Below are positions 24,701 to 58,755 of a DNA stretch of 64,000 nt, piece by piece. Position 1 is the stretch's first letter; every line of letters begins with the position of its first letter. The stretch covers positions 162,130,001 through 162,194,000 of the forward strand of contig NC_042997.1 of assembly GCF_006345805.1 (NCBI RefSeq), in the 5' to 3' direction. Both the position numbers and the translations under genes were made by a program. Source of the stretch: Octopus sinensis. Taxonomy: Eukaryota. The notes beneath the pieces were generated by a model that searched no databases, was not told the origin of the DNA, and was given only the letters and a program-made list of their open reading frames with translations.

Positions 24701-27700
24701 TGATGAAGGCTGGAGGGTATATCAGCTGAAATGTGTTAACAACAAACAAAATGAGGACAAATATCTGTCAGATGTAAATAATGAATCAGAATTCTGTTCA
24801 CATAATTAGTTTGATCGGTCAAAGTTTATTATAAACAACACAAACACTTTGTAATTTAATAGCTTTCAATGTGATACCTGTTAAACAGAAATTATTTTTA
24901 TTTAAGGAAAATTTAATAAAATCTAATTGTAAGTGAAATTATGCTAAATACAACTGAATTGAAAACCTTTTCTTCTTTTGGGTGCAAATTTTACATGAGT
25001 AGAAGCTTTTTTTAACAATTTTTATCCTGAAAATCACCTGCGTGAATTACACAGGTGCACAAATTACATGGGTTTTTACGATAAGTGAAAAACTATAAGT
25101 TGAAAAACTTTAAATCTCTTTTCCTGAAGTAGAATAAACAGAATCTATGATACTACTTCCAATTCTTAAACAAAAACTTTTTCAACTGAATGTCCTATCA
25201 ATGATACATAACACTTACATAAATACAATTTTTAAACATTTTATCAACTAGCAAGAGGAAATATCATCATTTAGCATCCTCTTTCCATGCTAGCATGTGT
25301 TATTTCTGTTTAATTACTTGGCTGTGAAGTTCTCAAAAAAAAGTATTTTTATCCTCAGTAAAAGAATAATTTATTCACATTAACAGGAGCAACACTACAG
25401 ATGAAGACTTGGGAGAATATACCAAGACAACGAATCCTGATGAAATTAATATTGATGATGACTTTGATACTGATGAAGATGAAGAAATTGAAGGTTCAGT
25501 AGCTAATTTTTCATTTTCTAGTTTTATTAAAAAAATCTATATTGATTCTGTTTTCATATACAGACCATGAAATGTCACCATAATTATCTAATTTAATTTG
25601 TATGTTGTTCAGTGGCATCAATTTAATATATTAACCCTTTAACATTCAAACTGGCCATATTCTACCAGTTTTATGTTCAAATTGGCCCCATCCTACTGCT
25701 CACATTTACCCTACAGTGTCATTCTAAAAAATAAACTATCATGTCATCAAAATCTTGAAGCTACAAGATAATGCATGATTAATTCAAAGCTGTGTGAATA
25801 AATAAGCATAACATTTGAAAGAATAATTTGAATGCTAAAAGGTTAAATTAAATAAACTTGGAGAAGTTACTGACTTCATTGACAATTAACAGGTCTGAAT
25901 CTAAATAGTGCCTGGGATGATAAAATTATTTTCAAGGAACAGCATTTTTGTTTTTACTTGGTCATAATTTTGTATATATGTGTGTGTGTGTATACACACA
26001 CACATGCATACATATATATGTAAATGCATCTTTGAATTAATATTATAGAACTGGAGGAGAAGTTTCAGGTGTGGAAACAAGGATTAGAATCGAAGGGCCT
26101 CAGAGTCAATCTAGCTAAAACCAAAGTCGTAATCAGTAGGAAGGTAGACAAATCACAAACACCTTCAGGTAGATGGCCCTGCTCGATCTGTAGAAAAGGT
26201 GTAGGTAGAAACTCTATAAGATGCACCAAGTGTAAGCTATGGACACATAAGAGATGCAGCAATGTCAAAGGAAGGCTAACTAGGAAGATGGTTTTTGTAT
26301 GTGGCAGATGCTCAGGAACAATAAACACTGAAAATGCTCTGAGACCAACTTCCGTCACTTTCCAGGGAGAAAAACTAGAAATAGTTGATAGTTTCCGTTA
26401 CCTAGGTGACCAAGTCAGCAGCGGGGGCGGGTGTGCTGAAAGTGTAACTGCTAGAGTAAGAATAGCTTGGGCAAAGTTCAGAGAGCTCTTACCTCTGCTG
26501 GTAACAAAAGGCCTCTCGCACAGAGTGAAAGGCAGACTGTATGATGCGTGTGTACGAACAGCCATGCTACATGGCAGTGAAACATGGGCCGTGACTGCTG
26601 AGGATATGCGTAAGCTCGCTAGAAATGAAGCCAGTATGCTCCGATGGATGTGTAATGCCGGTAGTTGAAAGAAAAGTTGGACCTAAGAAGCATCAGTTGT
26701 GGTGTGCAAGAGAGACGTTTGCGCTGGTATGGTCATGTGGCGAGAATGGATGAAGATAGTTGTGTGAAAAAGTGCCACACCCTAGCGGTTGAGGGAACCT
26801 GTGGAAGAGGCAGACCCAGGAAAACCTGGGACGAGGTGGTGAAGCACGACCTTCGAACTTTAGGTCTCACTGAGGAAATGACTAGAGACCGAGACCTCTG
26901 GAAGTGTGCTGTGCGCGAGAAGACCCAGCAGGACAAGTGAGTCCATAACCCGTGGCCTTCTACATGGGATGGAGCCAGCCTACGTATGCATACCTTCCCT
27001 TCTTGGGACACAAAACTCTACTTGTGAAGACATGATGAGGCAAGTGAGGATCAAAATCGAAATCGATCAATGGAAATTGCGGATGTGCTACCAGTGCCGG
27101 TGGCATGTCAAAACTCTGCTTGTGAAGACCCGTTGAGGCAAGTGACGATCAGAATCGAAATCGATCAATGGAAATTGCAGATGTGTTACCAGTGCCGGTG
27201 GCATGTAAGAGAACTTTCCGTTTCGCGACCGTTGCCAGCACCGCCCCGTTTCGTGTCCGTTGCCAGCCTCGCCTGGCCCTCGTGCCGGTGGCACATAAAA
27301 AGCACCATCCGTTCGTGGCTGTTTGCCAGCTCTGTCTGGCACCAGTGCGGGTGGCACGTAAAAAGCACCCACTACACTCACGGAGTGGTTGGCGTTAGGA
27401 AGGGCATCCAGCCGTAGAAACACTGCCAGATTTGACTGGGCCTGATGAAGCCTTCTGGCTTCACAGACCCCAGTAGAACCGTCCAACCCATGCTAGCATG
27501 GAAAACGGACGCTAAACGATGATGATGATGATGATGATTATAGTCCTGTTGTATGTAGTTGTTGTGGACACAACCTGTTGTTGCTGTATAATTAATGCAT
27601 TACTCTGGGGGTTTTTTTTTGGGGTCCACCAGGGTTCAGTACTCAGCCCCCTCCTATTTATCATAGTACTCCAGGCAATTACGGAGGAATTCAAGACAGG

Positions 27701-30700
27701 CTGTCCCTGGGAGCTCCTCTACGCTGACGACCTTGCTCTTATTGCTGAGTCACTATCAGAACTGGAGGAGAAGTTCCAGGTGTGGAAGGAGGGTTTAGAA
27801 TCAAGGGGCCTTAGAGTCAACCTAGCTAAAACCAAAGTACTAATAAGTAGAAAGGTAGACAATCCACAAATATCTTCAGGAAGATGGCCCTGCTCGATCT
27901 GTAGAAAAGGTGTAGGTAGAAACTCTATAAGATGTACCCAGTGTAAGCTATGGACACATAAGAGGTGCAGCAATGTCAAAGGTAGGCTAACTGGGAAGAT
28001 AGTTTTTGTATGTGGCAGATGCTCGGGAGCATTAACCTCCGAAAATCTGCAGAAAACAACTTCCGTCACTTTCCAGGGGGAAAAACTAGAAGTAGTTGAT
28101 AGCTTCCGTTATCTAGGTGACCAAGTCAGTAGTGGGGGTGGGTGCGCTGAAAGTGTAACTGCTAGAATAAGAATAGCCTGGGCAAAGTTTAGGGAGCTCT
28201 TACCTCTGCTGGTGACTAAAGGCCTCTCGCTCAGAGTAAAAGGCAGACTATATGATGCGTGTGTACGAACAGCTATGCTACATGGCAGCGAAACATGGGC
28301 TGTGACTGCTGAGGACATGCGTAAGCTCGTGAGGAATGAAGCCAGTATGCTCCGATGGATGTGTAATGTCAGTGTACATACTCGACAGAGCGTTAGCACC
28401 TTGAGAGAAATGTTGTACCTAAGAAGCATCAGTTGTGGTGTGCAAGAGAGACGATTGCGCTGGTATGGTCATGTGGCGAGAATGGATGAAGATAGGTGTG
28501 TGAGAAAGTGCCAATCCCTAGCAGTTGAGGGAACCCGTGGAAGAGGTAGACCCAGGAAAACCTGGGACGAGGTGGTGAAGCACGACCTTCGAACTTTAGG
28601 CCTCACTGAGGAAATGACCAGAGACCGAGACCTTTGGAAATATTCTGTACGTGAGAAGACCAGGCAGGACAAGTGAGCCCAGCCCACTTATGAATGCCTT
28701 TCCTCCCTTGGACACAAAGACCGGTTGAGGCAAGCGAAGTCGATATAGAACCTCATCCGACGACAGACACCCATGCCAACCCCCCATGCTTGCGAAGACA
28801 TGTTGGGGCAAGCGAAATCGAAATCGAAGTCGAAACCGAATTGAACCAGCCAGGATCCCTGGCCTGGTGGTACGTAAAAAGCACTATCCCACTCGTGGCC
28901 GTGGCACGTAAAATACTCCAATGCGACCGTACGACAGGCACCCATGCCAACCCCCTTTGCTTGTGAAGACATGTTGGGGCAAGCGAAATCGAAATCGAAT
29001 TGAACCAGCCAGGATCCCTGGTCTGGTGGTACGTAAAAAGCACTATCCGACTCGTGGCCGTGGCACGTAAAATACTCCAATGCGACCGTACGACAGGCAC
29101 CCTTGCCAACCCCCTTTGCTTGTGAAGACATGTTGGGGCAAGCGAAAATCGAAATCGAATTGAACCAGCCAGGATCCCTGGTCTGGTGGTACGTAAAAAG
29201 CACTATCCGACTCGTGGCCGATGCCAGCACCGCCTCGACTGGCTTCCGTGCCGGTGGCACATAAAATACACCAATCTGACCGTGGCCGTTGCCAGCCCCG
29301 CCTGGCACCTGTGCAGGTGGCACGTAAAAAGCACCCACTACACTCACGGAGTGGTTGGCGTTAGGAAGGGCATCCAGCTGTAGAAACATTGCCAAATTAG
29401 ACTGGAGCCTGGTGCAGCCTTCTGGCTTCCCAGAACCCCGGTCGAACCGTCCAACCCATGCTAGCATGGAGAACGGACGTTAAACGACGATGATGACGAT
29501 GATGATAATAATAATAATAATAATTGTGTACAGTGCTCAGGTGCACTACAACTCATCTAAAGTGTATATATAATCAGGTGAAGTTTCGGCGGATTTCGGA
29601 AAGCATGAGGGCCTTAAAAGATGCAGTGTCATGGCAGTCAACAACTGACGCAGGCAGTTTATTCCATGCTTCAGCAACTCTGAGCGTGAAAAAATGTTTC
29701 CGAAAGTCATGGGAGCTGTATTGTTTTCTGACTTTGTAGGCATGTCCACGTGTGTTAGACACATGGAGGTCAAAAAGGTGTTCAGTGTTGTTGTTGGTGA
29801 GGTGGTTGATAACTTTGTGGGTGTTTACCAAGTCCGTCGCCAAACGCCGGAGCTTCAGTGAATCCATGCCCAGGGAAACAAGGCGCTCAGAATATGGTAG
29901 GTGTCTGATGGAGGGTATGCGTTTGGTTGCACGTCTCTGGACAGATTCCAGGAGGTCAATGTTCTGTGCAAGATAGGGGTTCCAAACTGATGATGCGAAT
30001 TCCAAGTGTGGTCGTACCATAGCTGTATACAGTTTTAAATAGATGGCTGGAGAGCGGCTAACAAAAGACCTGCTGAGTGATGCCAAGACACCCTCGGCCT
30101 TCCTGACAATCTTAGAGATATGCTTTGACCAACGCAGATCACTGCTGACAGTGATGCCTAGGTCACGCTCGCAAGAGGATTTCTTGATATCAGTGTTGTG
30201 GAGGGTATGTGAACGCAGGGTTTTTTCTCCCAAAATGCATGGTGGTACACTTGTCCACAGCCAGTTTCAGTTGCCAGTCTGTGATCCATTGCTGCATTGT
30301 GTCTAGGTCTGATTGCAGGAAAGAGTTGTAGACATCAGGATCTGTCCTCTTGATTTCAAGGTACAGCTTGATGTCGTCTGCATATTTCAATACTGTGGCA
30401 TTCTTTAAATTGGCATCTATGTCGTTAATGTATGCCACAAACAAGAGGGGGCCAAGGACAGATCCCTGTGGTACACCCGATGACATCTCATATGGTGTAG
30501 AGTGCTGTCCTAGAACTGTGACTACCTCCTTTCGGCTGAGGATGAAGGATTTCAACCAGTTAAAAAGGTCATCCCCCACACCCATTGCAGAGAGTTTCAC
30601 CATAAGCCTTTTGTGTGGCACAGAGTTGAAAGCCTTAGCAAAGTCAAGGTAGACAACATCCACCCATGAGCCACTGTCAGTAATCTGAGTAATGTCCTCA

Positions 30701-33130
30701 AGGAACTCGACAAGCTGGTCACTGCAGCTGGAGTTAGGGACAAATCCATATTGTGAGGGTCGGATGAGACTGTGAGAGCTCCAGAAGTTCCAGAGTGTTT
30801 CTCTGACACACGATTCCATCAGTTTTGCAATACAGCTAGTGAGACTGACTGGGCGATAGTTGACAGGTGATGTGCGGTCGCCCTTTTTGAACAGAGGAAT
30901 GACACTGGCAGTTTTCCACTGCTCCGGAGTAGCACTATTGTTGAGACAGTACTGGAAGAAAATAGAAAGCTGGTGTAAAAGGAAGTGCCTGCCACGTTTG
31001 AGAAGCAGGTATGTAACTCCATCGAGACCAGGGGAGGCATAGTGTTGCGCTTATTTTGAAGGTGACGTCGCAGCATTGCAGGTGTAAATTCCATAGTTGT
31101 TATGGAGTTTGCTGTTAGTGATGGCGAAGATGGTACATTTTGACTTTCAACAGTGAATATGTTTGCATAGCACTCGGCAATGAGTTCTGCGCATTCCTTG
31201 GGGTCGTCAGTGATCTGGTTTGTGTGAGGGTTGCGAAGAGGGCCCACTGGAGAGTGAGGTCTCTGCTTTGAGTGCACATATTTCCAGAAAACCTTGCTGT
31301 CAGGATTGGCTGCTATGCACTGTTCAAATTCAAGCACTGCTTTTTTTGTCACTTGCTTGAGATGGTTGGAGGATTTATTCCGCTTCTTCCTGTTGGTGTC
31401 TGATTTATGCAACCTGTATTCCCGTTCAGCAGTCCGACGTTCCCTCCTGGCAAGTCGGACCGCTGAAGTTTCCCAAATTGCCCTTTTGGGGCGGTTCTTC
31501 TTTTTTTGTTTACGTGGCACTGATGCTGCACATGCTGCCCATATTGAGTCCAGGATACTCTGGAGTATAGTATTCACATCTCCAGAGTTGTAGAATTCAC
31601 GCCAGTTTGGGTGCTGTAGTTCAGTGTGGTACAGGTTCCAATCTGCTCTCTTCCAATCGAAGGAAGCAGATTGGAGATGGTTCAGGTTTTTGTTGCCCGC
31701 AAGAGCCAGATTGGCGATGATCATAGCATGATCAGAGTCACCTAGAGGTTCCTCCGTAGTGCAATTGATAACCGCTTCAGGAGTTGTGGTGAAGAGCAGG
31801 TCCAAGGTGTTGTCGCCTCTTGTTGGAGAGGTGACTACTTGTGACCAGTTTGAGTCCAGCACAAGCTCAACAAAATCGTTTGCACTCTGTGGCCAATGGA
31901 AGGTCTCCCAATCGATCTCAGGATGATTGAAATCGCCTGCAATAAACACATAAGTGGCTGTTTTCCTGGCAGCAGCTCGGAGGACATTGCAAAGCTGTGT
32001 GTCCCGATGGTAACTTGGGGGACGATAAACAACGCCAAGCAGGAGTGTTGACATGGTCATACGCACGTCACAGAAAAAAACTTCTTCTTGTGATTCGTTC
32101 AAATCGGCACAAGGAATTACCAAAAATTTGAACGAACGTAGACCATCACACCACCACCACCACGCGTTAGTGCGGTCCTTACGGAAGAGGTTGTACCCCG
32201 TAATGTTGAAAACCCCATCACAGAGTAAGGAATGCGCCCATGTTTCCGTGACAGTGATGAAGTCAGGGTCAACACTTCTGACGTAGGCGTTGAACAAATG
32301 TATTTTGTTGCATAAACTGCGAGCATTTAAGGACAACAATTTGTACCCTGCTCGCAGTTTATGATGGTGTGTAGAGGATGGCAGGTTGTTCTGGCTTAGT
32401 TTCCCTGAGTTGCTGTAGTCTTTTTAGTTATTGTGGGTAGAGAGCACTCAGACCAGCTGGTATCTCTCTTCCACGTTTCAGCAGTCTTGACAAATCTCCA
32501 GATTTGTCCATCTTCCCGAAGACTGAAGCTTTCTTGTAGAGCTGAGTTCCTATTCAGGGAAGCCACTACACGTAGCTTCGGACGTACATTGGACGGTAAG
32601 TCTGGGCGTGTTCGGAAGGTGGTCCGATTTTCCCGCCCAGCTTTAACTGAGGCCAGATGGTAAGAGGTTGCCTCAGTGGGGTCCGTAAAAGACAACTTGA
32701 TGAGCCTAGGTTTTGGGCCAGGTCGTCCAAGGCGGATAGCACCCGTTGGGGGAACGCAGCCTAGGTCTTTGGCTGAGTTGGCAGCAAAAGCCTGAAGATC
32801 AGCCATGTCTTCTGGCACCCCAATGGCAATGACTTCATGGGTGGCAGAATCCGCGGTCTTAAATGCGACAAGAGGTACAGGTACAGGGAGGTTCTTTAGC
32901 AGAGCATTCCGATAAGACCCCTCATTGTGGAGTCCAACCTGAATGGTTGCTTTTATTCCTGCTACTTCCCCTTTTAAAGCACAGATCGATTGTTGCAGTT
33001 CTGCAAGAACCGCACTGGTCAATTGGTGTTGTTGTTGTTACTGCTGCTGTTGCTCTGGTTGTGGTTGATTTTGTTGTTGCTGTTGTTGTTTGTTGATGTT
33101 TTGTTGCTGCTGCTCTGGTTGTGGTTGATT

Positions 33131-33165
<35 letters not shown>

Positions 33166-34330
33166 CTGGTTGTGGTTGATTTTGTTGTTGCTGCTGTTGC
33201 TGTTCCGCTCCTCCACCTCCACGGGAGTGGCAGGGGAGACACAATCGTCGGTTGTGGAGGCACGCAGGCCTGACACTGAAAAGTCCAAGATTTAAGCTGA
33301 ACCATCTTCCAGAGTCTATCCATCATAGCATTATGATGGCTCTTTTTTTGGCCTGGGATCTTCTGAAAGTCCGTGGCACATTGGAGGCAGACAGAGATGA
33401 GACATGTCCCACATTCGACCCAGCGATTACGGAACGTATTTTCGGGTTCCATACAGATGTGGCAGGTGTGATTTTCTGGGCAGTGTTCTATTTTAGAGCA
33501 GCGACCAGTCTTATCGCATCGCCCGCTATGGATTTCACCATGGCGATTCTGTTGGTTCTGGTCATCCGTAGAGACAGAAAATGTAAACAACAATACGATA
33601 AAAGTAAAATATAAAATATTTGTTTTTGATTCGTTCTTTTTTTGTATATTCCTTGTTCTTAAATATTGCGTGTATATATACACATGTTTCGTTCTTTTTG
33701 TGTATATTCCTTTTTTTCTTAAATATTGCGTGTGTATACATAAAAGTATTTGTGCGTATAGACACGGAGAAAGTTTGTAAACAGAAATGAAATTTTTGAT
33801 TTTTTTGCAGTGTAGTCCGTCACATTAAATAGTGTGATTTATTTTCACTCTGCACGTATATACATGTGTGCTACAAGTATCTATGTATGTATGTATGTCA
33901 CTGCTTTATAAATTTTGGACGTACTTACTGTCGTTCAACGATTTCTTTTACCCTCAACTACACGTGGTGAATTCTTCCATTGTAGATCTGTGATGTTCCC
34001 CATAAACAAAGAAATATTATTTGAAATATAAGTCTTTCATGTGGAATAAATAAAATAAATACTGGGATTTTTAATATGTTGTACTACTATTTAAAAATTC
34101 TTAGTTATTTTTGTATTGTATTTTTTCAATACAAAAAAGACAGTAAACTGTCAGGCCATAATTTATTTGGATACAAAGTCAAACTTTTATATTCAAAAAC
34201 TCCAAAATTATGTTTGTTTCAATTGTCTTCTTTTCATTAATTTTTTGCAGAAGTGAATCTTCAACAACAAGCTGTTCCTGCTGAAGTTTTTGGAAGTCTT
34301 GCTTCTGAAGAAAAGGAAAATGATGAATGA
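547..34330 (+). CDS. XAB2: Pre-mRNA splicing factor SYF1/XAB2 (HAT repeats), 5'-partial, 19 coding exons in window
   Basis: Hand-spliced GT-AG exons give one 1905-nt frame with consistent phases. Recognisable XAB2 peptides include [69 protein letters not shown] and the C-terminal VPAEVFGSL. Confidence 0.96.
810..2030 (+). mobile_element. Old, decayed RTE LINE 3' fragment with CT-rich 3' UTR
   Basis: Degenerate match to the RTE C-terminus (WAKLREL..., LCWYGH); ends in the gtggttggtgt...catccag tail motif. Confidence 0.7.
2183..2480 (-). mobile_element. RTE 3'-end fragment (short, 5'-truncated)
   Basis: Reverse complement of the RTE terminus (catg...catgg...cggacgttaaac(gat)n). Confidence 0.7.
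2671..2815 (+). CDS. XAB2: XAB2 exon 2: [12 protein letters not shown]...SGTSQE
   Basis: tatcag acceptor, gtaaca donor, phase 0/1. Confidence 0.93.
2896..3109 (+). mobile_element. tRNA-derived SINE family A with 18-bp target-site duplication
   Basis: A-box/B-box head (gctggcagaatcattag...gagttcaaat); AATATTTTTAAGACTTGT at both 2878-2895 and 3110-3127. Confidence 0.85.
3188..3333. mobile_element. hAT (Charlie-like) MITE, 146 bp
   Basis: TIRs CAGTGGTTCCCAA / TTGGGAACTACTG and a perfect 8-bp TSD ATCTAAAC on both sides. Confidence 0.9.
4288..4360 (+). CDS. XAB2: XAB2 exon 3: [24 protein letters not shown]
   Basis: tatcag acceptor, gtaatg donor, phase 1/2. Confidence 0.93.
5098..5176 (+). CDS. 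XAB2: XAB2 exon 4: [27 protein letters not shown]
   Basis: ttttag acceptor, gtattt donor, phase 2/0. Confidence 0.94.
5470..5830 (-). mobile_element. RTE LINE 3' ORF fragment
   Basis: Reverse strand matches the RTE C-terminal region (MIRWMC..., [17 protein letters not shown]). Confidence 0.75.
5865..6150 (+). mobile_element. tRNA-derived SINE family B (5'-truncated)
   Basis: Homologous to the full copy at 52645-53020 (gaccaaagccttgtgagt, CA/TA middle, ggtgctccagcatggct tail). Confidence 0.75.
6510..6629 (+). CDS. XAB2: XAB2 exon 5: [20 protein letters not shown]...QQIDD
   Basis: tggtag acceptor, gtaagt donor, phase 0/0. Confidence 0.93.
6840..7560 (-). mobile_element. RTE 3' UTR and tail remnant
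   Basis: (cat)n tail, tail motif in reverse, and a GA-rich UTR complementary to the CT-rich UTR at 1340-1950. Confidence 0.55.
9353..9453 (+). CDS. XAB2: XAB2 exon 6: [15 protein letters not shown]...WAELEIRN
   Basis: ttctag acceptor, gtgagt donor, phase 0/2. Confidence 0.93.
9589..9664 (+). CDS. XAB2: XAB2 exon 7: [26 protein letters not shown]
   Basis: ttctag acceptor, gtaagt donor, phase 2/0. Confidence 0.93.
10649..10735 (+). CDS. XAB2: XAB2 exon 8: [29 protein letters not shown]
   Basis: ttatag acceptor, gtatgt donor, phase 0/0. Confidence 0.94.
10765..11145 (+). mobile_element. Two tandem decayed SINE family A copies
   Basis: Repeated gctgacagaatcattagc...ttcaaa heads and ggctttgtgccaaaatttgaaacc tails. 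Confidence 0.65.
11525..11739 (+). mobile_element. Mariner-derived MITE (215 bp), deletion derivative of the element at 21503
   Basis: TIRs ...gctgaaaagttcctggcttt / aaagccaggaactttttggc...; its 3' half is homologous to 21503-21625. Confidence 0.85.
11812..11925 (+). CDS. XAB2: XAB2 exon 9: [18 protein letters not shown]...YEEAFK
   Basis: tttcag acceptor, gtaatt donor, phase 0/0. Confidence 0.94.
12350..13700 (-). pseudogene. Decayed hAT-related DDE transposase (cc8K15.2-like family); element possibly about 11985-14010
   Basis: Fragmented frames give LHIDGK (first Asp), [12 protein letters not shown] (DTT..NTG-like), [12 protein letters not shown] (CxxH) and [12 protein letters not shown]; many stops and frameshifts. 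Family assignment is from memory. Confidence 0.6.
14380..14790 (-). mobile_element. Old LINE C-terminal remnant (RTE-like family distinct from the PHD-bearing one)
   Basis: Reverse strand reads [15 protein letters not shown]...[12 protein letters not shown]. Confidence 0.55.
15482..15686 (+). mobile_element. piggyBac-like MITE, truncated copy of the 42180 family
   Basis: Homologous along its length to 42180-42401. Confidence 0.75.
15967..16053 (+). CDS. XAB2: XAB2 exon 10: [29 protein letters not shown]
   Basis: tttcag acceptor, gtaagt donor, phase 0/0. Confidence 0.95.
16604..16679 (+). CDS. XAB2: XAB2 exon 11: [25 protein letters not shown]
   Basis: ctacag acceptor, gtaagc donor, phase 0/1. 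Confidence 0.95.
17575..17760 (+). mobile_element. RTE 3'-end fragment
   Basis: aaaaagcaccc...gtggttggtgttaggaa...catccaactgtagaaac tail motif. Confidence 0.7.
18271..18380 (+). CDS. XAB2: XAB2 exon 12: [20 protein letters not shown]...EEKHE
   Basis: tcccag acceptor, gtttga donor, phase 1/0. Confidence 0.93.
18611..18714 (+). CDS. XAB2: XAB2 exon 13: [34 protein letters not shown]
   Basis: gcacag acceptor, gtatgc donor, phase 0/2. Confidence 0.94.
19184..19283 (+). CDS. XAB2: XAB2 exon 14: [34 protein letters not shown]
   Basis: catcag acceptor, gtaagt donor, phase 2/0. Confidence 0.95.
19975..20190 (+). mobile_element. SINE family A
   Basis: gcaagctggcagaatcattagc head, gagttcaaat B-box. 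Confidence 0.7.
20528..20644 (+). CDS. XAB2: XAB2 exon 15: [20 protein letters not shown]...ATYNTQ
   Basis: acacag acceptor, gtatgt donor, phase 0/0. Confidence 0.95.
21503..22025 (-). mobile_element. Mariner (irritans-like) 3' fragment with right TIR
   Basis: Remnant frames [33 protein letters not shown]-stop; TIR TA|CAAGGAGTTGCTGAAAAGTTCCTGG. Confidence 0.88.
22546..22609 (+). CDS. XAB2: XAB2 exon 16: [21 protein letters not shown]
   Basis: ttttag acceptor, gtaaat donor, phase 0/1. Confidence 0.92.
24063..24162 (+). CDS. XAB2: XAB2 exon 17: [18 protein letters not shown]...KGILFV
   Basis: Weak tandem AAG/AAG acceptor (start 24063 or 24066), gtaagc donor, phase 1/2. Confidence 0.85.
24645..24785 (+). 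mobile_element. Truncated copy of the hammerhead-bearing element (decayed core at 24695-24736)
   Basis: Homologous to 57250-57390; CTGATGA-A-GGCTG..CAGCT-GAAA but lacks the CGT of stem III. Confidence 0.8.
25387..25493 (+). CDS. XAB2: XAB2 exon 18: [36 protein letters not shown]
   Basis: taacag acceptor, weak gttcag donor, phase 2/1; contains the conserved NPDEI motif and acidic tract. Confidence 0.9.
25635..25842. mobile_element. piggyBac-like MITE family 2
   Basis: TTAA|CCCTTT...AAAAGG|TTAA ends; homologous copies at 60695 and 61635. Confidence 0.8.
26047..27538 (+). mobile_element. RTE LINE copy 1 (5'-truncated; RT C-terminal part with PHD insert, 3' UTR, (GAT)n tail)
   Basis: ORFs 26069-26668 and 26665-26940 (about 25-nt deletion frameshift) with [35 protein letters not shown] motifs. 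Confidence 0.93.
27621..29506 (+). mobile_element. RTE LINE copy 2 (5'-truncated; uninterrupted RT from QGSVLSP to stop 28676; expanded 3' UTR)
   Basis: [20 protein letters not shown] insert, FRYLG, WYGHV motifs; (GAT)n tail. Confidence 0.95.
28768..29222 (+). repeat. Tandem repeat in the RTE copy 2 3' UTR (units of 171 and 159 bp plus a partial third)
   Basis: caccc(a/t)tgccaacccc recurs at 28768, 28939 and 29098; the length difference comes from GAAATC-like hexamer copy number. Confidence 0.9.
29574..32399 (-). pseudogene. CR1 ORF2 (APE endonuclease + reverse transcriptase), split by four small frameshifts near 32165, 32123, 31043 and 30204
   Basis: Motifs SLNARSL, VTETW, YRPP, GDFN, LDL, SDH (EN); [30 protein letters not shown] (RT); [21 protein letters not shown] (CR1 C-terminus). 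No in-frame stops after frame correction. Confidence 0.92.
32396..33565 (-). pseudogene. CR1 ORF1: Cys8 PHD-like finger, polyQ/NQPQPE repeats, coiled coil, RRM-like domain
   Basis: CHIC..WVECGTC..CLQC..FQCQAC; Q-rich frame in register with [30 protein letters not shown]. One TAA at 33038-33040 and 2-3 inferred 1-nt deletions; the start ATG at 33565 is inferred. Confidence 0.75.
33630..33745. repeat. Two ~58-bp tandem units in the presumed CR1 5' UTR
   Basis: ttcgttctttt...tatattcc...cttaaatattgcgtgt occurs twice. Confidence 0.75.
34251..34330 (+). CDS. XAB2: XAB2 terminal coding exon: [26 protein letters not shown]-stop
   Basis: ttttttgcag acceptor, phase 1, TGA at 34328-34330; matches the conserved XAB2 C-terminus. 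Confidence 0.93.
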
Positions 34331-43687: not shown

Positions 43688-46600
43688 TCATCATCATCAT
43701 CATCATCATTTAGCGTCCGCTTTCCATGCTAGCATAGGTTGGACGGTTCAACCGGGATTTGGGAAGCCAGAAGGCTGCACCAGGCCCAGTCTGATCTACG
43801 GCTGGATGCCCTTCCTAACGCCAACCACTCCGTGAGTGTAGTGGATGCTTTTTACGTGCCACCGGCACAGGTGCCAGGCGAGGCTGGCAACGGCCACGAT
43901 CGGATGGTGCTTTTTACGTGCCACCGGCCACGTTCGGATGGTTCGCTTACATGCCACCGGCACTGGTATCACAGCTACAATTTCCATTGATGTTGATCGA
44001 TTTCGATTTTGATTCTGATTCTCACTTGCCTCAACAGGTCTTCACAAGTAGAATTTTGTGTCCCAAGAAGGAAAGGCACGCATAATTGGACTGGTTACAT
44101 CCCAGGTTGAGGCCACGGGTTATGGTCTCACTTGTCCTGCCGGGTCTTCTCACGCACAGCATACTTCCATAGGTCTCGGTCTCTAGTCATTTCCTTGGTG
44201 AGACCTAAAGTGCAAAGGTCGTGCTTCACCACCTCGTCCCAGGTTTTCCTGGGTCTACCTCTTCCACAGGTTCCCTCAACCGCTAGGGTGTGACACTTTT
44301 TCACACAACTATCTTCATCCATTCTTGTCACATGACCATACCAGCGCAAACGTCTCTCTTGCACATCACAACTGATGCTTCTTAGGTCCAACTTTTCTCT
44401 CAAGGTACTTACACTCTGTCGAGTATGAACACTGATATTACACATCCATCGGAGCATACTGGCTTCATTTCTTGCAAGCTTACGCATATCCTCAGCAGTC
44501 ACGGCCCATGTTTCACTACCATGTAGCATGGCTGTTCGTACACATGCGTCATACAGTCTGCCTTTTACTCTGAGCGAGAGGCCTTTTGTCACCAGCAGAG
44601 GTAAGAGCTCTTTGAACTTTGACCAGGCTATTCTTATTCTAGCAGTTACACTTGCAGCACACCCACCCCCGCTACTGACTTGGTCACTTAGGTAACAGAA
44701 ACTATCAACTATTTCTAGTTTTTCTCCCTGGAATGTGGTGGAAGTTGGTCTCTGTGCATTTTCAGGTTTTATTGCTCCTGAGCATCTGCCACATACAAAA
44801 ACTATCCTCCCAGGTAGCCTTCCTTTGATATTGCTGCACCTCTTATGTGTCCATAGCTTACATTTAGTGCATCTTATAGAGTTTCTACCTACACCTTTTC
44901 TACAGATCAAGCAGGGCCATCTACCTGAAGGGATTTGTGGTTTGCTTGCCTTCCTACTAATTAGGACTTTGGTTTTAGCTAGGTTGACTCTAAGGCCCTT
45001 CGATTCTAATCCTTGTTTCCATACTTGAAACTTCTCCTCTAGTTCTGATAGTGACTCAGCAATTAGAACAAGGTCGTCAGCATAGAGAAGCTCCCAGGGG
45101 CATCCTGTCTAGAATTCTACCGTTATTGCCTGGAGAACTATGATAAATAGGAGGGGCTGAGGACTGAACCTTGGTGGACCCCTAACTTTATCCTGAATTC
45201 TTCACTGTACTCGTTGCCAACCCTCACCTTACTGACAGTGTCCTTGTACATAGCTCTCACTAACCATTCATCTATCCCTAGTTTCCTCAGTGACCACCAG
45301 ATAAGGGATCGGGGGACCCTGTCGAAGGTTTTCTCCATGTCAACAAAAGCCAGGTACAGGGGCTTATCTTTGGCTAGGTATTTCTCCTGCAGCTGTCTTA
45401 CCAGGAATATAGCATCAGTAGTACTTTTCCCTGGCACGAACCCAAACTGCATCTCATCTAAACTATCTCTCTCTCTAATTAGTTGGGCTGTCAGTGTGCA
45501 CGCACGACAGAGTGTAAGCACCCTGAGAGAAATGCTGGACATAAGAAGCATCAGATGTGGTGTGCAAGAGCAACATGTACTGTGGATGGGTGAGGAGAGA
45601 TGTGTGAAGAAGTGCCGCTCCCAAACAGTTGAAGGTATTAGGGGGAGAGGTAGACCCAGGAAGACATGGGATGAGGTAGTCAAGCATGACCTCAGAGCAT
45701 TGGGCCTCACAGAGGCAATGACGAAGGACCAAGATCTCTGGAGATATGCTGTGACTGCAAAGACCCGGGCTGCTTCCTGCACCAGCTCCACATAGCCCCA
45801 GCCTGTTCAAAGTACCTTGGATTTCAGAACAACACACTGTGCTTGAGGAGACCTGTTGAATCAAGTACATGAACATCGAAATAAATATCAATGGAAATAG
45901 TAGTCGTGATACCTGTGCCGGTGGCACGTAAAAAGCACCATCCGATCGTGGCTGATGCCAGCGGCGCTTTAACTGGCTTCCGTGCCGGTGGCACGTTAAA
46001 AGCATCAACTGATCGTGACCACTGCCAGATTCCCCTGGCACCTGTGCCGGTGGCACATAAGAAGCACCCACTACACTCATGGAATGGTTGGCGTTAGGAA
46101 GGGCATCCAGCTGTAGAAACACTGCCAGATCAGACTGGAGCCTGGTGCAGCCTCCTGGCTTCCCAGACCCTGGTCGAACTGTCCAACCTGTGCTAGCACA
46201 GAAAACGGACGTTAAACGATGATGATGATGATCCTCTCCGAAACCTTCATTACCTGATCCAACAGCTTGATACCCCTGTAGTTATTTGTATCTAGGGCGT
46301 CACCTTTACCTTTGTAGCAGTTGACTATTATGCTGCCACACCAGTCATTGGGAATGACTCCTTCGTGTATCACCTGGTTAACTATACGGGTGACTAGGCT
46401 ATAGCCGACACTACCAGATATTTTGAGCATCTCTGCAGTAATTCTTCATGGGCCTGGGGCTTTCCCTGTCATCATGCTTCTAATTGCCTTAACTACCAAG
46501 GTACTGTCAACTCGGATAGCTGGTCCCTCTGTTGGGTCGACATTCGGCAGACTCTCTTTATCCCATTCATTTTCTTTATTCAGCAACCTTTCATAGTGGC

Positions 46601-47036: not shown

Positions 47037-47080
47037 CACACACACACACATATATATCTACATCCATTCATATATATATA

Positions 47081-49130
47081 TCATCATCGTTTAACGTCCG
47101 CTTTCCATGCTAGCACGGATTGGACGATTTGACTGAGGTCTGGCAAACCAGTTGGCTGCACCAGACTCCAATCTGATCCGGCAGAGTTTCTACAACTGGA
47201 TGCCCTTCCTAACGCCAACCACACTGAGAGGGTAGTGGGTGCTTTTGCGTGCCACTGGCACAATTGCTAGTTAGGTGGTACTGGCAATGGCCACACTCAA
47301 ATAGTGCTTTCTATGTGCCACCTGCACAGGAGCCAGCCCAGCAGCACTGGCAACGACCTCGCTCGAATGTTTTTTTTTCACGTGCCTCCAGCACAAGTGC
47401 TAGTAAGGTGATGCAGGTAACGATCATGCTTGAATGGTGTTTTTAACATGCTATCGGCACAGAGGCCAGCTTGTTACTCTGGCAATGATCTCACTTGTAT
47501 GATTCTCTTAACATGGATGCCAGTCATCGAATTTGATTTCAATTTCACTTGCCTCAACAGGTCTTTGCAAGCAGCGCTTAGTGTCCAATGAAGGAAAGGC
47601 ACGTATAAGTGCACTGGTTACACCCCTGGCATAAGCCGCAAGGTTATGGTCTCACTTGCACTTGCCGAGTCTTCTCAAGCACAGCATATTTTCAGAGGTC
47701 CTGGTCACTAGTCATTGCCTCGGTGAGGCCCAAAGTTTGAAGGTCATGCTTCACCACCTCATCCCATGTCTTCCTGGGTCCACCTCTTCCACAGGTTCCC
47801 TCATCTACAAGGGTGTGGCACTTTTTCATGCAGCTATCCTCAACCATTCTCGCCACATGACCATACCAGCACAGTCGTTTCTCTTGCACACCACTTCTGA
47901 TGCTTCTTAGGTACAACCTTTCTCTCAAGGCACTAACACTCTGTCGAGCATGCACTCCACTGTCACAAAATGCATAGATCCCGATAATATGAAAAGCAAA
48001 CGCAAGTATGCAGTTAGAAATTTGGAAGCAGGAATGTCTGCAAAAGTGAAAGCATCGCATTTTGTTTTCCTGTTTTATCATAGTATAGAGTTTCTTTTGA
48101 GGAATAACACATTACACATCCATCGGAGCATGCTGGCTTCATTCCTTGCTAGCTTACACATGCCCTCAGCAATCACGGCCCATGTTTCACTGCCATGTGA
48201 CATGGCTGTTCATACACATGTGTTGTACAGTCTAACTTTTACTCTGAGCGAGAATTTGTCGCCAGCAAGGGTAAGAGCTCTGTGAACTTTGCCCAGGCTA
48301 TTCTTATTCTAGCAGTTACACTTGCAGCACACCCACCCCCGCTACTGACTTGGTCACCTAGGTAACGGAAGCTGTCAACTACTAGTTTTTCTCCCTGGAA
48401 TGTGGCAGAAGTTGTTCTCTGCGCATTTTCAGTGTTATTTATTGCTCCCGAGCATCTGCCACATACAAAAACTATCCTCCCAGGTAGCCTTCCTTTGACA
48501 TTGCTGCACCTCTTATGTGTCCATAGCTTACATTTGGTGCATCTTATAGAGTTTCTACCTACGCCTTTTCTACAGATCAAGCAGGGCCATCTACCTGAAA
48601 GGATTTGTGGTTTGCTTGCCTTCCTACTTATTAGGACTTTGGTTTTAGCTAGGTTGACTCTAAGGCCCTTCGATTCTAATCCTTGTTTCCATACTTGAAA
48701 CTTCTCCTCTAGTTCTGATAGTGACTCAGCAATTAGAACAAGGTCGTCAGCATAGAGAAGCTCCCAGGGGCATCCTGTCTTGAATTCCTCCATTATTGCC
48801 TGGAGAACTATAATAAATAGGAGGGGGCTGAGGACTGAACCTTGGTGGACCCCTAACTTTATCCTGAATTCTTCACTGTACTCATTGCCAACCCTCACCT
48901 TACTGACAGTGTCCTTGTACATGGCTCTCACTAGCCATTCATCTATCCCTAGTTTCCTCATTGACCACCAGATAAGGGATCGGGGGATCCTGTCAAAGGC
49001 TTTCTCCATGTCAACGAAAGCCAGGTACAGGGGCTTATCTTTGGCTAGGTATTTCTCCTGCAGCTGTCTTACCAGAAATATAGCATCAGTAGTACTTTTC
49101 CCTGGCACGAACCCAAACTGCATTGCATCC
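47081..49130 (-). mobile_element. RTE LINE copy 4 (5'-truncated, mosaic, contains a 153-bp foreign insert)
   Basis: ORF 48239-49132 with QFGF, YADD and PHD insert; tail at 47081. Confidence 0.92.
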
Positions 49131-52342: not shown

Positions 52343-52476
52343 GTTAGGAAGGGCATCCAGCTGTAGAAACACTGCCAGATCAGACTGGAGCCTGATGCAG
52401 CCTTCTGGCTTCACAGAGCCCTGGTCGAACCGTCCAACCCATGCTAGCATGGAGAACGGACGTTAAACGATGATGA

Positions 52477-52481
<5 letters not shown>
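52343..52481 (+). mobile_element. RTE extreme 3'-end fragment
   Basis: cgttaggaagggcatccagctgtag...ccatgctagcatgg...aaac(gat)n. Confidence 0.85.
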
Positions 52482-56173: not shown

Positions 56174-56630
56174 AACCTGTTGAGTCAGGTGAAGTCATTG
56201 TTGTGGCTGATGACAGTACTGCCTGACTGGCACCCATGCTGGTGGTACATAGAAAGCACCATTCAAGCATGGTCAATGCCAGTGCCGACTGACTAGTCCC
56301 GTGTCAGTGGCACATAAAATGCACCATTTGAGCGTGGTCATTGCCAGTGCCACCTGACTGGCTCCCATCCAGTGGCATGTAAAAAGCACCATTCAACTAT
56401 GGTCAATGCCAGTACCACCTGACTTGCCCTCATACCAGTGGCACGTAAAAAGCACCCACTACACTCTTGGAGTGGTTGGCATTAGGAAGGGCATCCAGCT
56501 GTAGAAACTTTGCCAGATCAGATTGGAGCCTGGTGCAGCCTTCTGGCTTGCCAGCCCTCAGTCAAACCACCCAACCCATGCCAGCATGGAAAGCAGACGT
56601 TAAATGACAACGATGATGATGATGATGATG
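56174..56630 (+). mobile_element. RTE 3' UTR/tail fragment with four ~66-bp tandem units
   Basis: Four copies of ctgact..g(c/t)cagtggcacgtaaaaagcacc, then tail motif and (gat)n. Confidence 0.85.
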
Positions 56631-58483: not shown

Positions 58484-58755
58484 GAAAATTGTAGTTGCGA
58501 TACCTGTGCCGGTGGCACGTAAAAAGCACCATCTGAACATGGCCGATGCCAGTGCCACCTTGACTGGCTTCTGTGCTGGTGGCATGTAAAAAGCACCCAC
58601 TACACTCATGGAGTGGTTGGCATTATGAAGGGCATCCAGCTGTAGAAACACAGCCAGATCAGACTGGAGCCTGGTGCAGCCTCCTGGCTTCCCAGACCCT
58701 TGTCAAATCGTCCAATCTGTACTAGCATGGAAAATGGATGTTAAACGATGATGAT
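58484..58755 (+). mobile_element. RTE 3' UTR/tail fragment
   Basis: gtgccggtggcacgtaaaaagcacc units, tail motif, (gat)n. Confidence 0.85.

Follow-up and report, generated by a model that had tools for sequence, protein, structure and literature searches.

A candidate –1 ribosomal frameshift site between ORF1 and ORF2 of a CR1-like LINE in Octopus sinensis

How the second of the two open reading frames (ORFs) of a long interspersed nuclear element (LINE) is translated from a bicistronic RNA is unsettled beyond a few models. The question is raised again by a CR1-like LINE found in a stretch of 64,000 nucleotides of the Octopus sinensis genome (contig NC_042997.1, positions 162,130,001 to 162,194,000 of the forward strand, assembly GCF_006345805.1), which is referred to here as the window and is the source of all coordinates that carry no other name. 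A comparison of the 64-kb window revealed a single copy of this element, on the minus strand, in which ORF1 ends in the heptamer GGGAAAC followed directly by a stop codon while ORF2 lies in the –1 frame and is entered without an ATG. When this junction is compared with those of related elements, the site is quite probably a fossil signal for programmed –1 frameshifting by ribosomes in this family.

The junction in the octopus copy and its relatives

Read on the minus strand, the 3′ end of ORF1 in the window is ACT CAG GGA AAC TAA. The heptamer G GGA AAC (32399..32405, minus) has the X XXY YYZ form, read in the upstream or 0 frame, of a canonical –1 frameshift signal, and the TAA directly 3′ of it (32396..32398, minus) may, from its adjacency to the heptamer across lineages, stimulate the shift. 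The ORF2 frame opens at 32423, just after a TAA at 32426–32424, which is 18 nt before the heptamer and 25 nt (about eight codons) upstream of the ORF1 stop, and it continues uninterrupted into the endonuclease. The stretch made up of this opening and the linker towards the endonuclease (32340..32423, minus) contains no ATG, and in the window copy none was found in the ORF2 frame ahead of the LNARS and TETW motifs that carry the catalytic N and E. The downstream ORF is, as in canonical signals, open across the site and without its own start codon. A stable structure 5–9 nt 3′ of the heptamer was not found, nor was any in the folds of the first 35 nt, with no dedicated pseudoknot search made. 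The preliminary description of this DNA had placed the heptamer in the ORF1 frame immediately before the stop, had put ORF2 in the –1 frame from about eight codons upstream, unbroken into the endonuclease, and had seen no AUG before the catalytic N and the ETW motif; all of this was confirmed by frame reading.

Relatives were gathered from contigs encoding homologous proteins and from a scan of Joint Genome Institute metagenomes with an alignment of the endonuclease N-terminus (80 loci). The endonuclease alignment was also run against bacterial and archaeal genomes and viral contigs, where it detected no relatives. The protein database contributed one octopus ORF1 relative (P0001) and 11 matches to the endonuclease query, and an exact-sequence lookup of a window ORF found no match. 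L003 (P0013) was left out because no ORF1 is visible on its contig, which begins 200 nt ahead of the endonuclease, and the bird and turtle proteins were left out of the junction comparison because they are chimeric gene models of fragments. Endonuclease identities given below are for the 120 aa of the N-terminus, with the L001 copy as the reference. L001 is a full-length copy in Octopus vulgaris (OX597842.1, L001:5177-9497).

In L001, which is 93.5% identical to the window copy, the junction is GGGAAAC-TAA with the phase kept and without an ATG. The same heptamer is found at the end of ORF1 in L002 (endonuclease 83% identical, GTG GGA AAC TGA), L004/L005 (57% identical, CAG GGA AAC TAG) and L089 (37% identical, TCG GGA AAC TAG), and one codon before the stop in L092 (ORF1 32% identical, CAG GGA AAC TTC TAA). 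L056 (endonuclease 29% identical) has GGGAAAC 15 nt before the stop and also an in-phase A AAA AAC further upstream. Elsewhere other canonical X XXY YYZ heptamers take over. L087, with a homologous ORF1, ends in TCA AAA AAC TGA, and L090/L091, with a related ORF2, read TCA AAA AAC TGT, the –1 frame opening two codons earlier. Two further loci with a related ORF2 are L086, with A AAT TTT 3 nt before the stop and a –1 frame that opens directly ahead of the heptamer, and L085, a decayed copy with C CCA AAA within the overlap.

ORF2 is in the –1 frame at all of these loci and its frame opens upstream of the heptamer in every lineage, giving an overlap of 10–58 nt except in L056, where it is 157 nt. 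In five lineages a 0-frame TAA, TGA or TAG follows the heptamer directly, and in two more the stop is one codon off. No ATG was found in the ORF2 frame before the endonuclease at any of the loci listed except L092, and the count was zero for the 11 representative junctions with short or moderate overlap. An AUG overlapping or shortly after the ORF1 stop was likewise absent from the window, L001, L002, L004, L087, L089 and L090, and was seen only in L088 and L092. It had been asked of the family whether the frame relationship might be an indel unique to this copy, whether the heptamer is conserved and whether an in-frame AUG exists. The phase is the same in L001 and about ten related lineages, the heptamer is conserved across the family and its relatives or exchanged for another of the same type, and the lineages with short overlap have no in-frame AUG.

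An in-phase heptamer was present in 11 of the 12 representative junctions. In the overlap windows of these 12 junctions, X XXY YYZ heptamers were found 13 times in the ORF1 phase and once in each of the other two phases, and both of the out-of-phase heptamers are on one A7 run. As a base rate, heptamers occur in phase at 0.94% per codon within the bodies of ORF1 and ORF2 at these loci. For each of six lineages with a short overlap to have one, the probability is then about 8e-8 if independence is assumed, a value that overstates the case because four to six GGGAAAC lineages share ancestry. For the GGGAAAC lineages, conservation is the relevant point across the junctions compared, and the heptamer columns are identical in 5–7 of seven lineages versus about three of seven in the flanks. 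The replacement of GGGAAAC by AAAAAAC, AAATTTT or CCCAAAA with the pattern kept is hard to explain by protein-level constraint or sequence-specific binding alone. The comparisons of phase, heptamer and missing ATG are therefore consistent with, and lend support to, the earlier suggestion that an ORF1-ORF2 fusion may arise by a –1 shift at G GGA AAC.

In an active element, ORF1 would be translated and most ribosomes would terminate at the stop directly after G GGA AAC. A fraction of them would slip back by one base, so that the tRNA for Gly pairs anew with GGG and that for Asn with AAA, and would resume with CUA (Leu) into ORF2. The predicted product is an ORF1-linker-endonuclease-reverse transcriptase fusion made in a fixed low ratio to the ORF1 protein, comparable to retroviral Gag-Pol. 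Slow decoding of the stop, while the Asn-tRNA is on AAC in the P site, may favour the slip, as the conservation of the arrangement suggests. We infer both the ribosomal shifting itself and its frequency and, because the 0-frame stop is the one feature that travels with the heptamer, that the adjacent stop rather than a conserved RNA structure would be the common stimulator. Extended to the whole of an old CR1-like LINE clade represented by the octopus elements and the metagenome contigs, the proposal would be that the endonuclease and reverse transcriptase are made only as a –1 fusion, the abutting stop replacing a pseudoknot, and this wider version is put forward tentatively.

Several observations weigh against a frameshift signal, in addition to the shared ancestry of the GGGAAAC lineages. 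The C-terminus of ORF1 has a conserved Gly-Asn, for which GGA-AAC is the coding sequence, and part of the heptamer conservation could be at the protein level. No stable structure starting 5–9 nt after the heptamer was found in any lineage, again with no dedicated pseudoknot search made, and downstream folding was unremarkable except in the octopus copies and L004 (z = –2.9). Most of the relatives are single metagenomic contigs, and some (L085, L092) are decayed. In L088 (L088:635-690), which is nested in the heptamer clade, the ORF1 stop is followed 30 nt later by an ATG in the –1 frame and lacks a nearby heptamer, the one listed in phase, TTTTTTA, being some 270 nt further upstream. ATGs in the ORF2 frame are present in L092 too. 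These two loci indicate that ATG-based expression is possible in the clade, and as L088 differs within the clade, the ORF2 expression strategy is evidently exchangeable.

In more distant families (30–35% endonuclease identity) a conventional stop-restart layout is seen, ORF2 being in the +1 frame and its ATG 7 nt past the stop of ORF1. In the distant +1 family, CAGGTTTCA pairs with TGA(AAC)AACCTG to form a hairpin that encloses the ORF1 stop and the ORF2 ATG (L014:1628-1690, L015:1462-1524, L024:1139-1201, L029:666-728, L043:1441-1503 and L045:2326-2388). The stem is invariant in the six sequences and so provides covariation evidence neither way.

A short motif, GAACAACCTG, was found at 32382..32391 (minus), 8–17 nt past the heptamer in the window, and recurs at the ORF1/ORF2 junctions of distant families. 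Sites for the motif (G)AACAACCTG are at L001:6629, L002:761, L056:965, L014:1673, L015:1507, L024:1184, L029:711, L043:1486 and L045:2371, amongst others. It is located 8–22 nt after the heptamer in the –1 families and directly after the ORF2 ATG in the distant family with a +1 frame and an ATG, and because its frame relative to ORF2 differs it does not simply reflect amino-acid conservation. Another relative, L077 (L077:480-540), departs from the common junction as L088 does, and its overlap includes a run of seven A, outside the canonical phase.

Downstream structure and competing explanations

The usual stimulator of –1 frameshifting is a hairpin or pseudoknot starting about 5–9 nt 3′ of the heptamer. 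A perfect 15-bp hairpin with a 23-nt loop (32311..32363, minus), which the preliminary description had reported with one arm complementary to the NARSL codons and a spacing of about 35 nt, was recovered by an inverted-repeat search and by folding. Its arms (32363–32349 and 32325–32311) are 100% complementary, it starts 35 nt after the heptamer, beyond the usual distance, and its 3′ arm consists of the N-A-R-S-L-C codons of the endonuclease. Over 131 nt the fold has an energy of –33.4 kcal/mol (z = –4.2), with none of 200 shuffles folding as well, and the 100-nt fold after the heptamer has z = –6.0 in the window and z = –4.8 in L001. In an element of 4.4 kb, chance would not come close to producing a perfect 15-bp repeat. 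Although the 5′ arm is in the variable linker, it is an exact match to the constrained NARSLC codons, and this may point to selection or to a templated mutation. A search of Rfam gave no match at threshold, and the hairpin had only a chance-level microRNA-like match (E 0.7).

Covariation in the hairpin was judged on the two octopus family copies and L002. The L001 hairpin has one A-C mismatch, where the G of a CpG in the 5′ arm has become A with no compensating change, and this is the sole difference between the two copies within the hairpin. In L002, 11 of the 15 hairpin positions are able to pair, two of them as G-U, and the fold has a z of about 0. Folding found no equivalent in the remaining lineages. 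Minimum-free-energy folds of the 60 and 100 nt after each heptamer revealed no shared downstream stem and no constant distance; L004/L005 have a moderate stem at +11 to +14. A weaker pairing had also been described, and its position was confirmed, CCTGC (32385–32381) starting 13 nt after the heptamer and pairing with GCAGG (32351–32347), which overlaps the 5′ arm of the hairpin. As a stimulator it was rejected, having about –6 kcal/mol and a z near 0 and forming only in folds that exclude the 15-bp hairpin.

At 35 nt, the hairpin is too far off to contact a ribosome positioned on the heptamer, and the only ribosomes able to meet it are those that have already shifted. From the lineages compared we conclude that it is not the conserved stimulator, and it may be a family-specific modulator, at most accessory. 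The idea that the hairpin drives recoding was not upheld, as the structure was found in the octopus family alone, has no compensatory changes and is too far downstream. A narrower form, in which it is an essential recoding stimulator in the octopus family alone, acting through a stalled leading ribosome or as a platform for non-AUG entry, appears doubtful. The stability of the hairpin, its perfection far beyond chance, the exact match of a 5′ arm in a poorly conserved and free linker to constrained codons, and the weaker version in L002 are all in its favour, but the spacing is not the usual one, no such hairpin is present in the other heptamer-bearing lineages, the hairpins of the two octopus copies differ only by a CpG change that is not compensated, and ribosomes would have to shift before meeting it. 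It is also distinctly unlikely that ORF2 is expressed by termination-dependent reinitiation or non-AUG initiation, in the style of the SART1 UAAUG or human L1, with the heptamer conserved for another role, be it to encode the Gly-Asn C-terminus or to bind RNA or protein. In the literature on how LINE ORF2 is translated, coupling or reinitiation is favoured (PMC3894237, PMC2881922), the ORF1 stop is tightly conserved beside the site, L088 in the same clade has a stop and then an ATG, and the conserved motif GAACAACCTG at the junction hints at an additional RNA element. However, 11 junctions have no ATG in the ORF2 frame between the upstream stop and the catalytic residues, that frame opens upstream of the heptamer in every lineage, and reinitiation does not predict an X XXY YYZ pattern (GGGAAAC, AAAAAAC, AAATTTT, CCCAAAA) that is always in the ORF1 phase.

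The phase also bears on whether the frame is changed by the ribosome at all. RNA polymerase or reverse transcriptase could slip on an A-rich run, and runs of 6–7 A are found at the junctions of L087, L090 and L077, but the commonest site, GGGAAAC, contains three G and three A, too short for known slippage, and the heptamers keep strictly to the ORF1 phase (13 versus 1 and 1), a signature of the ribosome and not of a polymerase; slippage by a polymerase is very improbable. Least credible of all is that the phase is an accident of decay, a private indel with the heptamer there by chance. The window copy is clearly dead, with ORF2 in three frames, ORF1 split and compensating indels in the endonuclease, but this explanation is refuted by the same phase, heptamer and stop in the second copy and by the pattern across about ten related lineages.

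The element, its decay and its classification

The body of the LINE copy covers 29505..33793 on the minus strand, as do all of its parts below, and was delimited by a 4.3-kb alignment with 93.5% identity to L001, with the 5′ end undefined. Two ORF1 segments were taken from the ORF list, an N-terminal segment with a Cys/His zinc-finger-like stretch (32922..33683) and a C-terminal segment of 208 codons plus the stop (32396..33022), which ends in TQGN by the junction reading as well. They are in different frames in the window copy and in the O. vulgaris copy. A CAA/CAG-rich tandem repeat (33023–33204, minus, periods of 3 and 51 nt, 2.7 copies) is located between the two segments. The C-terminal segment is 81% identical to an O. 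vulgaris hypothetical protein and is homologous to ORF1 of L002, L004/L005, L087 and L092.

ORF2 is split over three frames (32423–30819, 30819–30190 and 30233–29574). Part 1 contains the apurinic/apyrimidinic (AP) endonuclease domain (30819..32339), identified by Pfam matches (Exo_endo_phos_2, E 5e-14; Exo_endo_phos, E 9e-9) and alignment to L001, and relative to L001 two compensating indels in it have produced a 16-residue out-of-frame stretch that scrambles a conserved part of the endonuclease. A frameshift mutation separates it from part 2, the reverse transcriptase (30190..30819; RVT_1, E 4.6e-31), and the frame changes again in part 3, the C-terminal region (29574..30233), which is collinear with an intact 737-aa ORF of L001. 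The 3′ untranslated region and microsatellite tail occupy 29485..29573, the (ATT)n(ATC)n tail itself being at 29485–29524, and there is no poly(A). With ORF1 split and ORF2 broken at three or more places, the window copy is dead.

A second inverted repeat is present within ORF2 at 31637–31675, with 17-nt arms that are 88% complementary and a 5-nt loop. The approximately 100 nt just 3′ of the LINE tail (29400–29484) belong to a short repeat with at least eight copies in the window (83–95% identity), the others being at 27434–27542, 43688–43791, 46133–46232, 47080–47173, 52383–52479, 56521–56629 and 58662–58755. This is probably a short interspersed nuclear element or other interspersed repeat that adjoins the LINE or was hit by it. 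A 385-aa ORF on the plus strand (27519–28676) encodes the C-terminal part of a different reverse transcriptase with a Cys-rich finger and is a fragment of another retroelement family.

The element is CR1-like in the broad sense, a name that rests on the best matches and a rough tree. It has an ORF2 with an N-terminal AP endonuclease and a reverse transcriptase, and its 3′ end is a short tandem repeat instead of poly(A), as in CR1-type elements. The best named protein matches are CR1-derived proteins of birds and turtles (33–38% identity). A quick neighbour-joining tree of ORF2 placed the heptamer lineages in one clade, sister to the bird and turtle sequences together with many metagenomic families, and this clade adjoins the bird and turtle sequences and is not inside them. 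GGGAAAC is probably ancestral, being shared by L089, on the deepest branch, and the crown lineages (octopus, L002, L004). A Pfam scan of the window ORF1 segments found no match; amongst the relatives, L087 ORF1 has a PHD match below the cut-off (E 6e-4) and L004 and L089 ORF1 have only weak coiled-coil matches. The likeness to vertebrate CR1 lies in the two ORF2 domains, the microsatellite tail and perhaps the PHD-like and coiled-coil features of ORF1 relatives, and the difference is that in the quick tree the heptamer lineages form their own clade. The CR1 label used at the outset holds in this broad sense.

Comparison with known systems

PEG10 uses G GGA AAC. The octopus junction resembles those of retroviruses, long terminal repeat (LTR) retrotransposons and PEG10 in its use of the same X XXY YYZ heptamers and in the expected Gag-Pol-like fusion, and it shares with the retroviral and LTR layout an upstream gene whose product is presumably structural and RNA-binding and a downstream –1 enzyme gene without its own start. 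It differs from the retroviral and LTR sites in that the host element is a non-LTR LINE, there is no structure at 5–9 nt, the stop usually abuts the heptamer and the overlap is short (10–58 nt, L056 excepted). Both G_GGA_AAC and A_AAA_AAC are listed among the most shift-prone heptamers (PMC5009743).

A layout of heptamer and adjacent stop with no structure is possibly a variant of known –1 signals. The umbravirus-type –1 site requires a 0-frame stop 3 nt downstream, where any stop works and a sense codon fails (PMC5009743). This any-stop rule matches the interchange of TAA, TGA and TAG at the LINE junctions. The umbravirus site differs in being from a plant RNA virus, in having its stop 3 nt away rather than adjacent, and in the additional involvement of long-range RNA structure.

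Within LINEs, a –1 frameshift was inferred earlier for TRE5-A and TRE3-A of Dictyostelium, so this kind of signal is not unprecedented in them. Those elements, compared here by description and not by sequence, are from another LINE clade and host. In SART1 of Bombyx, which uses UAAUG coupling, and in human L1, which uses unconventional initiation, translation of ORF2 depends on translation of ORF1, and in SART1 a downstream RNA structure modulates the efficiency (PMC3894237, PMC2881922). The RNAs of SART1 and L1 are bicistronic like that of the octopus element, but in them an AUG coincides with the ORF1 stop or comes after it and the ORF2 protein is a separate one, whereas the octopus element has no AUG and an in-phase heptamer. 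Reviews of LINE biology and translation include only reinitiation, internal ribosome entry sites, UAAUG coupling and 2A peptides, and do not mention frameshifting (PMC3894237, PMC2881922). A large recoding review includes HeT-A gag, TART and L1 as the only non-LTR elements and no LINE ORF2 case. No published GGGAAAC frameshift in a CR1-type element or other LINE was found in a search that mostly did not extend to subscription journals.

If the reading of the junction as a –1 frameshift signal is correct, the ORF2 protein of these elements would be covalently tied to the ORF1 protein, which would bear on stoichiometry, cis-preference and particle assembly. The junctions would also be examples of –1 frameshifting encoded in animal genomes without an obvious downstream structure. 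On the wider, tentative version, with the fusion as the only source of the enzyme and the stop as stimulator, a LINE would follow the Gag-Pol strategy, with its own solution to the translation of ORF2 and to the retention of the enzyme on its RNA, and a minimal signal of a heptamer plus a stop would function on animal ribosomes.

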